Origin: Macrostomum lignano
Lineage: Eukaryota
Length of the DNA stretch: 64,000 nt
Direction: 5' to 3'
NCBI GenBank assembly: GCA_002269645.1
Contig: NIVC01002603.1
Location: 62,001-126,000 of the forward strand
Below, in pieces: positions 11,740 to 29,094 of this stretch (within the stretch, counting starts at the first letter, position 1; every line of letters starts with the position of its first letter). The notes below the pieces were generated by a model that was not told where the DNA came from, did no database searches, and saw only the letters and a program-made list of their open reading frames with translations. The position numbers were made by a program, and so were the translations under genes.

Positions 11740-12246
11740 TCAACACGGCCGATTCTCTCGACCATCCAGCGGCCGCGGCAGCCGGCGCCTCCTGTCCCGA
11801 TCCCGACGTCGCCAGGACGAGGTCGACGTCGACGACGGGTGAATGAGCTCGACGGGTACCTCGCCCTCGGACAGCGACGAGTCCATCCGGGAGTCCGGGC
11901 GCAGCTCCGGCCGCGAGTCGCAGAACCGGGAATCCACCGGGGAATCCAGCCGGGAATCCAGCCGGGAATCCGCTCGTGAATCCGTCGTGTAGCCAAGTCG
12001 CGAGTCCGCAGTCGGCGAGGACATCCGAGAGGAATCCCCAGGCGGGAAATCCGTGGGGGAATCCTGGCGAGAATCGGCCGTTGCCACCGTCGCCTCGTCA
12101 TCGCGAGGCAAAACAAGGCGGCGAAGTCGACGCGCCTCGGAGGCGATGCGCTGTTCGGCTGTGCAGCCGCCGACTCCGCCGCCGTCGCTGCTCAGGTTGT
12201 CGTAGTTGGACTCAGAGGCGGGTCCGCTGCCAACGGAGTGCTGAGG
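11740..12246 (-). CDS. AC-like exon 17 (terminal; ESNYDNL motif, DSR repeats)
   Basis: AAAGCAG acceptor, phase 0, stop at 11742-11740. Confidence 0.75.
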   Translation of the reverse strand, partial: PQHSVGSGPASESNYDNLSSDGGGVGGCTAEQRIASEARRLRRLVLPRDDEATVATADSRQDSPTDFPPGDSSRMSSPTADSRLGYTTDSRADSRLDSRLDSPVDSRFCDSRPELRPDSRMDSSLSEGEVPVELIHPSSTSTSSWRRRDRDRRRRLPRPLDGRENRPC

Positions 12247-27200: not shown

Positions 27201-29094
27201 CTTGCAGCCTGCGCAATTGCGCTTCCCCGATTCTCCCCAAATCCCAGATCAGCTGTCTAATAAAGTAGATGTGTCCATTTTAAAACTAACTGATGGATGG
27301 GTGGGGGAAGGGGAAATTGAAAGAGTTCTGTGAGTACAATTTTATATAACTGACTATTATATGATAAATAGCTCTACATTAAATCTGTGAACTTGGGTGG
27401 CACCAACTAGAAAAGCTGATAAGGCTTAAAAACTAACAGGTTATAAAAATTACACATAGCCAACAAACGGAAGTGCAAATTAACAGATCGATAACTACAG
27501 ACCAATTGTTGAGCCCAAAGCCCATATTAAAATAACAGATTTATGATTATTGGAACAGATTCAATAATTACCCGAAACCATTTTATTAATCAATTTCTAA
27601 GAAACAGCTCTATCTTAAATTATTAATTTCTAAGAAACAGGCCTATCTTAAATTATCGATTTGTAAGAAACAGCTCTATCTTTAATTAACGATTTCTAAG
27701 AAACAGGTCTATCTTTAATTATCGATTTGTAAGAAACAGCTCTATCTTTAATTAACGATTTCTAAGAAACAGGTCTATCTTTAATTATTAATTTCTAAGA
27801 AACAGCTCTATCTTAAATTATTAATTTCTAATAAACAGGTCTATCTTTAATTATCGATTTCTAAGAAACAGCTCTATCTTAAAGTATTAATTTCTAAGAA
27901 ACAGCTCTATCTTTAATTATCGATTTCTAAGAAACAGCTCTATCTTAAATTACTAATTTCTAAGAAACAACTTGACACCCAAAATAGTTAGTAACCGAGA
28001 GCCTCATGTTTCTAGTAACACAGCTTAACCCCCTGATTACCCCAGCTAATGCTGGCACCCATTTTACAGCTGGATGAACTGAAGCAATGCAGGGTTAAGT
28101 GTCTTGCTCCAGGACACAAATTGTTTCGAGCGGGTCGAGAATCGAAGCCCCGACCTTTCAGTGGTGATTCCGACGCTCTAACCAAGACTCCGAAAAACAG
28201 GGTACCAATTTGGGATGACACCCGTGACGCACGGCTACCTACCGAATTCCAAAAATGAGCGCGCAGGTGCCTGCAGGCCTCGGGCATCGCCGTCTCGCCG
28301 CCGCTGCCGCCGCCGCAGCGTCGATAAGCCAGCAGGCCGGAGCAGACGGTGTACCCGGTGGCCAGCATGACGCAGTAGCCAGCGGTCAGGAGAATCGGCA
28401 GCGGCAGCAGGCACAGCACAGACAGCAGCAGCGGCGCCACCTGCCAGAGGCCCGATGGCAGAGCGGCCGGCCGAGCAGCGGACAGCGGCAGCGCGGCCAC
28501 CGACATCAGAGCGGCGCAGGCGAGGTCCAGGGCGGCCGCTGCACCGGCGTGGCTGCCCGGCTGAAATCGGCGGCTGCCGACAAAGCAGGCGGCGCCGCAC
28601 AGCAGCGCCAGCGTGGTGGTGTACAGGCAGCAGCGGACTGCGGGTTCGACCGCCGAAGCCGCCGACGGCGCCGCGGCAACCGCAGCCGCCTCGGCCGCCG
28701 CCATCGTTAGGGCGAAGATCGAATGCAGCGGCAGCAGTCGGAGTAGCAGCTTCCGGTCCCAGCGGAATGCGTGTCGCTTGGACAGCACGCTGAAGCTGCT
28801 GGCTGCTGCCGCCGCCGCGGTGACCCTGCCGGCACCTCCGTAGCCTCCGCCGATGCCGCAGCATCCGGGGCAGCAAAGTCGGCGATCGGAGTCGGAAATT
28901 GCGGCCGGATCCGCGTAGGTGGCCAAGTCGGTGTTCAACTCGGCGAAAAAGAAAGCGGAGGCGCGTTGCTGCTGCTGTTGCTGCTGATGGCTGTGATGCC
29001 GAAGAAGATGCTGGCGGTACAGCTTCGCAGAGTCACTGCCGCCTCCGCCTCCACCACCGCCGCCATCTCCATGCTCGTCGAAACGATGACTCAT
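11740..29094 (-). CDS. Transmembrane class III adenylyl cyclase homolog, predicted catalytically inactive; 17 exons, about 1651 aa
   Basis: Exons (5'->3'): 29094-28243, 25046-24897, 24323-24208, 23842-23728, 22019-21889, 21629-21471, 20780-20345, 19510-19473, 19386-19194, 18725-18543, 17654-17559, 16965-16495, 15620-15510, 15217-14768, 14043-13861, 13477-12713, 12246-11740. Sum 4956 nt, all junction phases compatible; one GC-AG intron. M1-C1a-C1b-M2-C2a layout with motifs [81 protein letters not shown]. Confidence 0.88.
12355..12675. repeat. ~29-bp minisatellite GGAAATCCAAACGGGGAAACCCCAAAACG
   Basis: AC-like intron 16. Confidence 0.9.
12713..13477 (-). CDS. AC-like exon 16 (Gln/Pro-rich and acidic tail)
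   Basis: CATTCCAG acceptor, GTGAGT donor, 255 open codons. Confidence 0.8.
13570..13790. repeat. Degenerate TATTTCTGGGAAATTCCCC repeat
   Basis: AC-like intron 15. Confidence 0.65.
13861..14043 (-). CDS. AC-like exon 15 (end of C2a)
   Basis: [28 protein letters not shown]; donor CAG|GCGAGT. Confidence 0.88.
14100..14570. repeat. Degenerate CCTTAGCAACCATA repeat with higher-order duplication
   Basis: AC-like intron 14. Confidence 0.8.
14768..15217 (-). CDS. AC-like exon 14 (C2a)
   Basis: [30 protein letters not shown]; AG/GT boundaries. Confidence 0.88.
15246..15480. repeat. 48-bp tandem repeat (TGAAATGTACATTTGCAATGTACGTTGGGGAAGAGAAT...)
   Basis: 3-4 copies, AC-like intron 13. Confidence 0.9.
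15510..15620 (-). CDS. AC-like exon 13
   Basis: [15 protein letters not shown] (canonical LLxNILPxHVA). Confidence 0.85.
15830..16465. repeat. 34-bp purine-rich minisatellite (GGAAGGGAGAGGGGCAGAGGGTAAGAGAGG...)
   Basis: AC-like intron 12. Confidence 0.9.
16495..16965 (-). CDS. AC-like exon 12 (M2 transmembrane helices)
   Basis: Hydrophobic segments ending [10 protein letters not shown] (canonical RLDFLWKxQ). Confidence 0.85.
17029..17527. repeat. 21-bp minisatellite GATCCCATCAGCTGGTTCATA
   Basis: AC-like intron 11. Confidence 0.95.
17559..17654 (-). CDS. AC-like exon 11 (M2)
   Basis: [32 protein letters not shown], phase 0/0. Confidence 0.8.
17760..18515. repeat. (CAGA)n microsatellite with CACTAA interruptions
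   Basis: AC-like intron 10. Confidence 0.95.
18543..18725 (-). CDS. AC-like exon 10 (M2 start)
   Basis: FHQQEDRGF...[12 protein letters not shown]. Confidence 0.82.
18786..19187. repeat. 30-bp minisatellite TCTGATTGGCCCAGGCTGTCCTATCTCGAT
   Basis: AC-like intron 9. Confidence 0.95.
19194..19386 (-). CDS. AC-like exon 9 (C1b)
   Basis: [16 protein letters not shown]. Confidence 0.82.
19473..19510 (-). CDS. AC-like exon 8 (38-nt mini-exon)
   Basis: TTTTTCAG acceptor, GTGAGT donor; reconciles phase 0 to phase 2. Confidence 0.65.
19595..20275. repeat. 16-bp minisatellite GGGATTTGAGATGACT and variants
   Basis: AC-like intron 7. Confidence 0.95.
20345..20780 (-). CDS. AC-like exon 7
   Basis: RILVSRDTY (canonical RVHITxxT); donor GTTGGT is the least certain boundary. 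Confidence 0.75.
21043..21141. repeat. Near-perfect ~29-bp inverted repeat (hairpin, ~99 nt)
   Basis: AGATAATGCATGGTTTTTAGGGTTGTATT (21043-21071) pairs with AATACAACCCGTAAAAAACATGCATTATCT (21112-21141). Confidence 0.85.
21471..21629 (-). CDS. AC-like exon 6 (C1a)
   Basis: [16 protein letters not shown]. Confidence 0.88.
21695..21843. repeat. 21-bp tandem repeat GTTTCTAACCTGAAAGCGCCA
   Basis: AC-like intron 5. Confidence 0.95.
21889..22019 (-). CDS. AC-like exon 5 (C1a)
   Basis: [15 protein letters not shown] (canonical KILGDCYYCVSGLP). Confidence 0.85.
22066..22780. repeat. (GATA)n microsatellite
   Basis: AC-like intron 4. Confidence 0.95.
23345..23602. repeat. (TCTG)n microsatellite
   Basis: AC-like intron 4. 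Confidence 0.95.
23728..23842 (-). CDS. AC-like exon 4 (C1a)
   Basis: [12 protein letters not shown]...[13 protein letters not shown] (canonical SILFADIVGFT...LLNELFARFDKL). Confidence 0.85.
24208..24323 (-). CDS. AC-like exon 3
   Basis: [17 protein letters not shown] (canonical ERLLLSVLPxHVAxEMK). Confidence 0.85.
24484..24862. repeat. (CTAA)n microsatellite
   Basis: AC-like intron 2. Confidence 0.95.
24897..25046 (-). CDS. AC-like exon 2
   Basis: [15 protein letters not shown]...[13 protein letters not shown]. Confidence 0.85.
25235..26645. repeat. 21-bp purine-rich minisatellite GAGGGAGAGACAGGAGAGTGA with (GA)n tracts
   Basis: AC-like intron 1. Confidence 0.95.
27590..27968. repeat. 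33-bp AT-rich minisatellite TTTCTAAGAAACAGCTCTATCTTTAATTATCGA
   Basis: AC-like intron 1. Confidence 0.9.
28010..28192 (-). mobile_element. tRNA-derived CORE-type SINE (head + CORE)
   Basis: Minus strand: TGGTTAGAGCGTCGGA...GGCTTCGATTC (Pol III box-like), then TGTGTCCTGGAGCAAGACACTTAACCCTGCATTGCTTCAGTTCATCCAGCTGTAAAATGG, resembling the MIR/CORE consensus; second copy at 58420-58545. Confidence 0.8.
28243..29094 (-). CDS. AC-like exon 1 (N-terminus + M1 helices)
   Basis: ATG at 29094, [25 protein letters not shown] donor at 28242; acceptor 40 nt upstream of ATG. Confidence 0.85.

Follow-up and report, generated by a model that had tools for sequence, protein, structure and literature searches.

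The window analyzed here is a 64,000-nucleotide stretch of the Macrostomum lignano genome (assembly GCA_002269645.1, contig NIVC01002603.1, positions 62,001 to 126,000 of the forward strand). On its minus strand, at window positions 11740..29094, lies BOX15_Mlig009489g1, a gene of 17 coding exons for a protein built like a transmembrane adenylyl cyclase (tmAC) that has probably lost its catalytic function. The product is GenBank PAA56580.1 (P0003 in our protein set), a 1656-residue 'hypothetical protein BOX15_Mlig009489g1' that UniProt names 'adenylate cyclase'. Exon coordinates were obtained by greedy exact spliced mapping of the P0003 protein onto the window, which placed it in 17 minus-strand exons from 29094 to 11743 with a translation identity of 100%. 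The ATG begins at 29094, the last codon ends at 11743 and a TGA stop occupies 11742-11740. The 1656 codons contain no stop or frameshift, and all 16 introns are bordered by GT-AG or GC-AG, with 15 of the GT-AG type and one, intron 15, of the GC-AG type (CAG/GCGAGT). The marks of a pseudogene (frameshift, early stop, lost splice site) were found neither in the window copy nor in a second genomic copy, copy B, described below. An earlier note, made from the letters of the window only, had read an uninterrupted 17-exon frame here, and the exact mapping of PAA56580.1 returned the same coordinates and exon count.

A hand-built model of 13 exons (1175 residues, stop at 13849) was dropped when P0003 showed two extra small exons; that model had also placed the acceptor of exon 13 differently and missed the GC-AG intron that precedes the tail exons. 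Intron 15 (13860-13478) is common to all three genomic copies of the gene, and its retention would end the reading frame three codons on (RDQASG, then a stop), yielding a tail-less protein that finishes with C2 as canonical adenylyl cyclases do. The GenBank annotation of the Mlig_3_7 assembly was derived solely from RNA-seq-based, genome-guided transcript assemblies and TransDecoder (PMC5730564). Because RNA-seq assemblies are its only source, the gene is transcribed and spliced as modelled. The earlier note would have abandoned its proposal had the gene not been expressed, and the transcript-derived model speaks against that outcome. No tissue or stage expression data under the gene identifier were found in paper supplements or by full-text search.

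The layout of PAA56580.1 follows the metazoan tmAC order, with six transmembrane helices (6TM), CTE_1, C1, C1b, a second set of 6TM, CTE_2, C2 and a tail of 423 residues. Hydropathy gave six hydrophobic segments at residues 116-302 and six more at 738-964. Pfam PF00211 matches the protein twice (98-99 bits total), as expected for class III cyclase domains, and phmmer places the cyclase domains at residues 361-539 and 1108-1231. When aligned to AC5 (8sl3) with phmmer, both halves (M1-C1 and M2-C2) match, including the helical regions ahead of C1 and C2. The 6+6 hydropathy pattern and the paired PF00211 matches uphold the complete M1-C1-M2-C2 architecture claimed in the earlier note. Both CTE motifs can be read, as LVTSLVP and KNLLP, the latter being the NxLP core that defines CTE_2 (PMC9552081). 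Pfam AC_N and Adcy_cons_dom, which both match canonical rutabaga-type relatives, have no match in PAA56580.1.

All exons lie on the minus strand. Exon 1 (28243..29094, residues 1-284) encodes a Gly/Gln-rich N-terminus and TM1-5, and exon 2 (24897..25046, residues 285-334) encodes TM6 and the start of the helical/CTE_1 region, which align with the TM6-helical domain of AC5. The 17-residue CTE_1 stretch and the start of C1 fall in exon 3 (24208..24323, residues 335-373). C1 continues through exon 4 (23728..23842, residues 373-411, beta1), exon 5 (21889..22019, residues 412-455) and exon 6 (21471..21629, residues 455-508, beta4-alpha4) and ends in exon 7 (20345..20780, residues 508-653), which also encodes much of the C1b linker, a low-complexity region that could not be aligned. 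Exon 8 is a micro-exon within C1b (19473..19510, residues 654-666), and exon 9 (19194..19386, residues 666-730) holds the end of C1b and a 16-residue segment preceding M2. TM7 and TM8 are encoded by exon 10 (18543..18725, residues 731-791) and the 32 residues of TM9 by exon 11 (17559..17654, residues 792-823), both with rutabaga-type conservation. An extracellular loop and TM10-12 follow in exon 12 (16495..16965, residues 824-980), CTE_2 with its NxLP core in exon 13 (15510..15635, residues 981-1022), and C2 in exons 14 (14768..15217, residues 1023-1172) and 15 (13861..14043, residues 1173-1233), the latter bordering the GC-AG intron. The Pro-rich/acidic tail is encoded by exon 16 (12713..13477, residues 1234-1488) and by exon 17 (11743..12246, residues 1489-1656), where it ends with DSR(L/A/V) repeats.

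Residue equivalences in the two cyclase domains were taken from HMMER/phmmer alignments to AC5 (8sl3), AC8 (8buz) and mycobacterial Cya. All agree with a MAFFT alignment of 212 domains, in which both domains of PAA56580.1 are set against 210 further class III domains taken from the top 150 database hits. Canonical residues are numbered as in AC5 C1 and AC2 C2. The metal ligand D396 is replaced by Cys378 (codon TGC, 23829-23827, exon 4) and the second metal ligand, D440, is kept as Asp423 (21986-21984, exon 5). Of the base-contacting residues, K938 is Arg1099 (codon CGC, 14989-14987, exon 14) and D1018 is kept as Asp1175 (14037-14035). The transition-state residues N1025 and R1029 have become Arg1182 (14016-14014) and Ala1186 (14004-14002), and K1065, which contacts the gamma-phosphate, is Asp1221 (13899-13897); these four codons are in exon 15. 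The composite site thus reads C,D in C1 and R,D,R,A,D in C2 where the canonical one reads D,D and K,D,N,R,K, a replacement of five of the seven residues that contact metal, base, ribose and phosphate. The corresponding motifs are VVSACIDG at residue 374, DGDTY at 421, VKIRC at 1096, FDLWGE at 1174 and an 11-residue motif at 1177-1187, and the position of the VKVKGKG loop reads VWLDGAR. The reciprocal, pseudo-symmetric site is also degenerate: the metal positions of C2 read G,R, and the base and transition-state positions of C1 read S,G,D,A. The full catalytic set is therefore absent from both pockets. That set would comprise, in at least one site of the dimer, the two metal Asp, a Lys/Asp (alternatively Glu/Cys) pair for the base, the Asn and Arg of the transition state and a Lys for the phosphate. 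Since this set defines a class III cyclase as an enzyme and was looked for without being found, PAA56580.1 is not classifiable as a working class III cyclase.

The substitutions at D396, K938, N1025 and R1029 and the retention of D440 and D1018 had all been called by eye in the earlier note, and the profile and MAFFT alignments agree on each of them. So does its reading of a lost VKGKG loop, which can now be made specific, as VWLDGAR puts Asp1221 in the place of K1065. It had also named the restoration of catalytic residues in a correct alignment as grounds for giving up the proposal, and neither the HMMER nor the MAFFT alignments restored them.

To place these substitutions among other class III cyclases we used the same 210 domains. 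Per column, 135-163 of them carry the canonical residue; at the first metal position 153 of the 210 have Asp, and Cys lies outside the six commonest residues there. The rutabaga-type proteins P0111, P0148, P0101, P0157, P0024 and P0041 all read DD/KDNR, and P0038 reads DD/KDNK, with Lys replacing Arg. In a crude census of two-domain proteins, 53 of 58 had the full metal pair and the Asn/Arg pair somewhere; P0003 is among the other five, as is a protein from Palpitomonas that is fully degenerate. Judged from these sequences, the predicted degenerate state is unusual among eukaryotic cyclases, yet not unique.

A derived motif, G-E-A-A-(D/R)-(T/V)-A-D-A-L, occurs in both C1 (residues 490-501) and C2 (residues 1177-1187), at the place where cyclases usually have G-(D/N)-x-V-N-x-A-S-R-M. 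C1 and C2 of PAA56580.1 are 42% identical over 53 residues. For the same stretch of mammalian AC5 a hand count puts the C1-C2 identity at about 38%. As 42% is no higher than this presumed usual level, the idea that C1 and C2 arose by an internal duplication particular to this protein, or by gene conversion, was dropped as unsupported. The GEAAxxADAL motif that the two domains share may reflect parallel change or a local conversion.

Word-indexed homologue searches, including searches with candidate-exon peptides, returned M. lignano sequences only and no close orthologue elsewhere. When the C1 fragment P0001 was compared with 1.84 billion representatives, the matches were M. lignano fragments, and the best foreign matches, generic protist and fungal cyclase domains, reached at most 71 bits at 27-29% identity. 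Six further M. lignano entries in UniProt (P0004, P0005, P0011, P0012, P0194 and P0195) come from an older assembly and represent this gene family by models with frameshifts or chimeric joins; fusion to neighboring genes has given such models names that mislead, such as 'DENN domain-containing', 'Piezo_RRas_bdg domain-containing' and 'Protein kinase domain-containing'. P0004, P0005, P0011 and P0012 were rejected as distinct relatives because they proved to be frameshifted versions of this family's gene models.

A full-length phmmer scan covering 178 database sequences pointed to one lineage, with top matches that are all of the rutabaga/AC1 type: P0111 at 197 bits, P0024 at 186 bits and P0038 (Owenia) at 164 bits. 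P0024 is the Danaus 'Ca2+/calmodulin-responsive adenylate cyclase', which clusters with a protein named Rutabaga. AC5 and AC8 scored 67 and 56 bits in full-length phmmer comparison. Over the pre-M2 segment and TM7-9, raw BLOSUM62 scores were 192-242 against rutabaga-type proteins vs 43-50 against AC3 and AC6 types. According to a published criterion, the identity of a tmAC isoform shows in the isoform-specific conservation of its membrane domains (PMC9552081), and by that measure PAA56580.1 shows the conservation of the rutabaga/ADCY1 lineage. Its M1 similarity is weak (23-28%). On this sequence evidence, the architecture of PAA56580.1 puts it in the tmAC family, and its membrane domain puts it in the rutabaga/AC1 lineage.

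The different parts of the protein have diverged to very different degrees. In the TM7-9 core, identity to P0111 is 49%, within the 44-72% found for six genuine rutabaga-type proteins; the corresponding values are 26% vs 64-89% for C1 and 25% vs 59-82% for C2. Identity between its catalytic domains and those of every metazoan tmAC tested is only 20-27%, whereas those enzymes are 40-82% identical to one another, even across subfamilies. Such low identity indicates that a long time has passed since catalytic constraint was lost. The usual order, in which the catalytic core is better conserved than the anchor, is thus inverted in PAA56580.1, where TM7-9 is better conserved than the catalytic core. 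TM7-9 stands at the normal level for an orthologue, and the pre-M2 segment and both CTEs are still recognizably conserved. We read this inverted order as suggesting that the catalytic domains have been freed from the constraint of catalysis, with part of the anchor still under ancestral constraint.

The gene exists in three near-identical genomic copies: copy A in the window, copy B (P0007, NIVC01000418.1) and copy C (P0006, NIVC01000884.1). The Mlig_3_7 assembly is highly redundant owing to a recent genome duplication (PMC5730564). Downstream of copy A, at about 1740-6731 on the minus strand, lies a gene with immunoglobulin I-set/Ig_3 domains, which also follows copy C; because A and C have the same neighbor, these are segmental duplicates and not retrocopies. 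The ratio of nonsynonymous to synonymous substitution rates (dN/dS, or omega) was estimated by the Nei-Gojobori method, with a binomial test against 1. Copies A and B differ by 36 synonymous and 30 nonsynonymous substitutions (dS 0.028, dN 0.008, omega 0.30, p = 1.8e-6), A and C by 10 and 6 (dS 0.013, dN 0.003, omega 0.22, p = 2.8e-3), and B and C by 24 and 22 (dS 0.031, dN 0.010, omega 0.33, p = 1.8e-4). Between A and B, CTE_1 and C1 have no nonsynonymous and two synonymous differences, so that the C1 protein is identical, and omega is 0.27 for CTE_2 and C2, 0.17 for M2 and 0.26 for the tail. Alignable intron sequence has a p-distance of 5.0% for the same pair, vs a dS of 2.8% and a dN of 0.8%. 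All of the catalytic-site substitutions are common to the copies. Every part of the protein is under current purifying selection, including the degenerate C1 and C2 and the long tail.

The copies also differ in the number of DSR(L/A/V)DS repeats in the tail (last exon of copy B, L002 20733-20900), and the P0007 protein skips one DSR repeat unit of its own genome sequence, an artefact of mapping transcript to genome.

We consider it likely that PAA56580.1 is an expressed, selectively maintained pseudoenzyme derived from a rutabaga/AC1-type tmAC, one that does not synthesize cyclic AMP (cAMP) and acts through its membrane anchor. Lost catalytic motifs, a transcript-derived gene model and purifying selection, the three elements of an operational definition of a pseudoenzyme, are all found here, with the inactivity itself being predicted. 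The maintained pseudoenzyme put forward in the earlier note is accordingly supported by the substitutions, the degenerate second site, the transcript-derived model and the dN/dS values. Its proposed selection test came out in part: dN/dS among the three genomic copies is 0.22-0.33 and not near 1, but the intended comparison with related species yielded no orthologue. Because the best-conserved part of the protein is TM7-9 of the anchor, the data favor the membrane sensor or scaffold among the functions that note had listed, which also included a dominant-negative partner and a G-protein sink. The rutabaga/AC1 derivation, the GC-AG intron 15 and the identity of Asp1221 at K1065 are new beyond it.

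We hypothesize that the protein no longer makes cAMP and that its membrane anchor would sense a ligand or lipid, or would pair with other membrane proteins. Coupling through the CTE helices would link the anchor to a C1-C2 dimer that lacks catalysis, and this dimer, together with the Pro-rich/acidic tail, could provide a conformational output or a docking platform. Overall, PAA56580.1 would then be a receptor- or scaffold-like signalling protein, not a generator of second messenger. We propose sensing by the anchor because TM7-9, the pre-M2 segment and the CTEs are conserved and because the degenerate C1 and C2 domains and the tail are still constrained. Such a role would agree with the receptor function proposed for tmAC anchors (PMC11606603, PMC12414865) and with the effects that an engineered inactive AC6 has independently of cAMP (PMC5540275). 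A broader version, in which a rutabaga/AC1-lineage cyclase became, in macrostomid flatworms, a membrane receptor or scaffold without catalysis, with TM7-9 as the conserved core and as a case of separation of function, is possible, and we offer it tentatively. More speculatively, the degenerate C1-C2 pocket might have been reused as a nucleotide or ligand sensor, and PAA56580.1 might be the only rutabaga orthologue left in M. lignano.

Several points weigh against a maintained, anchor-based pseudoenzyme. The sensor or scaffold function is inferred from the pattern of conservation, and motif-predicted pseudoenzymes sometimes keep activity through relocated residues. Selection was sampled over a short span, between very recent paralogues or haplotigs (dS of about 0.03, with 66 substitutions between A and B), and an omega of about 0.3 indicates moderate constraint only. 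In copy C, exons 2-8 are intact except that exon 7 (L006 8361-8795, the homologue of window 20345-20780) has lost 1 bp from a run of GGGG, a frameshift because of which this copy is annotated as a 5'-truncated protein of 1016 residues. Either this is a recent disabling mutation, which may point to partial dispensability of the copies, or it is an assembly error of long reads at a homopolymer. The homologue searches also found no orthologue in other species that would show the dead state to be a long-term one.

One alternative is that PAA56580.1 is still an active nucleotide cyclase working through non-canonical or relocated residues, perhaps with another preference for substrate or metal. Cys378 could, for example, bind metal together with Asp380 or Asp423, and Arg1099 or Arg1182 could replace the Lys and the Arg. 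Such an enzyme would account for the two of seven residues that are kept (Asp423 and Asp1175), the Asp two residues past the Cys (SACIDG), the basic character of two of the replacements, the presence of the fold-defining glycines and hydrophobic core motifs, and the purifying selection that still acts on the catalytic domains. What makes it very unlikely in our view is that the transition-state Asn and Arg, the gamma-phosphate Lys and one metal ligand are all replaced together, when a single substitution at D396, N1025 or R1029 lowers the catalytic rate constant by one to three orders of magnitude. In addition, the reciprocal site has degenerated as well, all six relatives of the rutabaga type whose two transition-state residues were read have the canonical set, and catalytic-domain identity has fallen to about 25%.

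The gene could also be a redundant copy decaying in a recently duplicated (neopolyploid) genome, with a reading frame that has simply not had time to be disrupted. There are indeed three near-identical copies, one with the 1-bp deletion in exon 7, Mlig_3_7 is known to be highly redundant (PMC5730564), and homologue searches found no orthologue elsewhere. Yet 1656 codons and 16 splice junctions are intact in at least two copies despite a catalytic-domain identity of 20-27%, dN/dS is 0.22-0.33 and significantly below 1, the exons are about fourfold less diverged than the introns, TM7-9 is conserved at the level of an orthologue, and the gene is transcribed and spliced. We therefore give decay little chance. 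A dedicated regulatory subunit seems similarly improbable; in that case the protein would act as a dominant-negative partner in hetero-oligomers, or as a sink for Gs, Gi or calmodulin, through contacts of its catalytic domains and not through its anchor. The C1-C2 module and the CTEs are kept and constrained, and an engineered inactive AC6 has cAMP-independent effects in cells (PMC5540275), but the cytosolic domains that carry the contact surfaces for G proteins and calmodulin are the most diverged parts, and the conserved part is TM7-9. Together this leaves a pseudoenzyme that acts through its anchor as the reading we prefer.

The window as a whole is rich in tandem repeats, and its exons are GC-rich. 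Nearly every intron of BOX15_Mlig009489g1 has its own distinct tandem-repeat array (window 12348-30276, counting introns and flanks). These include an AGAC-type array (17761-18515), 44 copies of a 16-mer (19593-20298), 179 of GATA (22065-22780), 94 of ACTA (24486-24862), 67 of a 21-mer (25240-26643) and, just upstream of the ATG, 37 of a 28-mer (29240-30276). Intron lengths vary among the paralogous copies, chiefly at such arrays. From 36000 to 46000 the window has an AT-rich block (GC of 0.30-0.35 vs 0.42-0.58 in the remaining window), in which an annotated plus-strand gene of 597 residues starts at about 36923. Exons of a protein arginine methyltransferase-like gene follow at 45846-48543 on the plus strand, with an S-adenosylmethionine-binding motif, weak Pfam matches to PrmA and PRMT5, and a CARM1/PRMT-like appearance by eye. 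Two tandem alpha/beta-hydrolase fold-3 paralogues, resembling arylacetamide deacetylase and hormone-sensitive lipase, are found at 53367-55185 and 58692-61109 on the plus strand (Pfam Abhydrolase_3 E-values of 8.6e-28 and 8e-24). Between them, on the minus strand, is an open reading frame of 228 residues (57083-57766) that scores 25 bits against the QRICH1 domain, below the Pfam cut-off of 30.8, and that may be of mobile-element origin.

PAA56580.1 is a public sequence, and its name is public too. Its lost catalytic set, its rutabaga ancestry and its inverted order of conservation appear to be undescribed as far as the searchable literature shows, and in that literature we found no description of a natural full-length pseudo-cyclase of the tmAC type. 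Loss of the catalytic set and catalytic domains at about 25% identity, with TM7-9 nonetheless conserved and the gene under purifying selection, argue that the anchor is worth keeping on its own. If true, this would be natural evidence for a conserved role of the AC1-type membrane domain apart from cAMP synthesis, and it would add tmAC-type cyclases to the enzyme families with natural full-length pseudoenzymes. 'Adenylate cyclase', the UniProt name of PAA56580.1 and its copies, is then probably wrong as a statement of function. M. lignano is a tractable animal with established RNAi, in situ hybridization and transgenesis, so the question is testable there.

The known proteins closest to PAA56580.1 are the rutabaga/ADCY1-type tmACs (group I, stimulated by Ca2+/calmodulin through calmodulin-binding sites in C1b and C2). 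It resembles them in its 6TM-CTE-C1-C1b-6TM-CTE-C2 order and best full-length scores (186-197 bits), in the orthologue-level identity of TM7-9 and the pre-M2 segment (39-49%), and in a long low-complexity C-terminal tail like that of invertebrate members (P0111, 1846 residues; P0024, 1653; P0038, 2031). Unlike them, it has five of seven catalytic residues replaced, C1 and C2 domains at about 25% identity vs 59-89%, and no AC_N or Adcy_cons_dom match. A class III dimer pocket that lacks catalytic residues and is regulatory is known from the forskolin-binding second site of tmACs and from soluble guanylyl cyclase. In those proteins one site stays catalytic, whereas both pockets of PAA56580.1 are degenerate. 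PelD, LapD and other degenerate GGDEF/EAL proteins have domains of nucleotide-cyclase fold that lost catalysis and that membrane signalling proteins retain for sensing ligands or as scaffolds; they differ from PAA56580.1 in being bacterial, in belonging to another family and in having known ligands.

Pseudoenzyme concepts are treated more generally in PMC10211241. The engineered AC6mut is, like PAA56580.1, a full-length tmAC without catalysis, predicted in the case of PAA56580.1, and its cellular effects remain (PMC5540275). AC6mut was made artificially, by mutating a mammalian enzyme at a single site, whereas PAA56580.1 is natural and has diverged catalytic domains. The two six-helix membrane domains make up about one third of a tmAC sequence and their function is still debated (PMC12414865, PMC11606603). 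They have been proposed to be lipid receptors, on the argument that membrane domains show isoform-specific conservation (PMC9552081, PMC11606603, PMC12414865). The anchors in those studies modulate cAMP synthesis, whereas that of PAA56580.1 would presumably act with no cAMP output.

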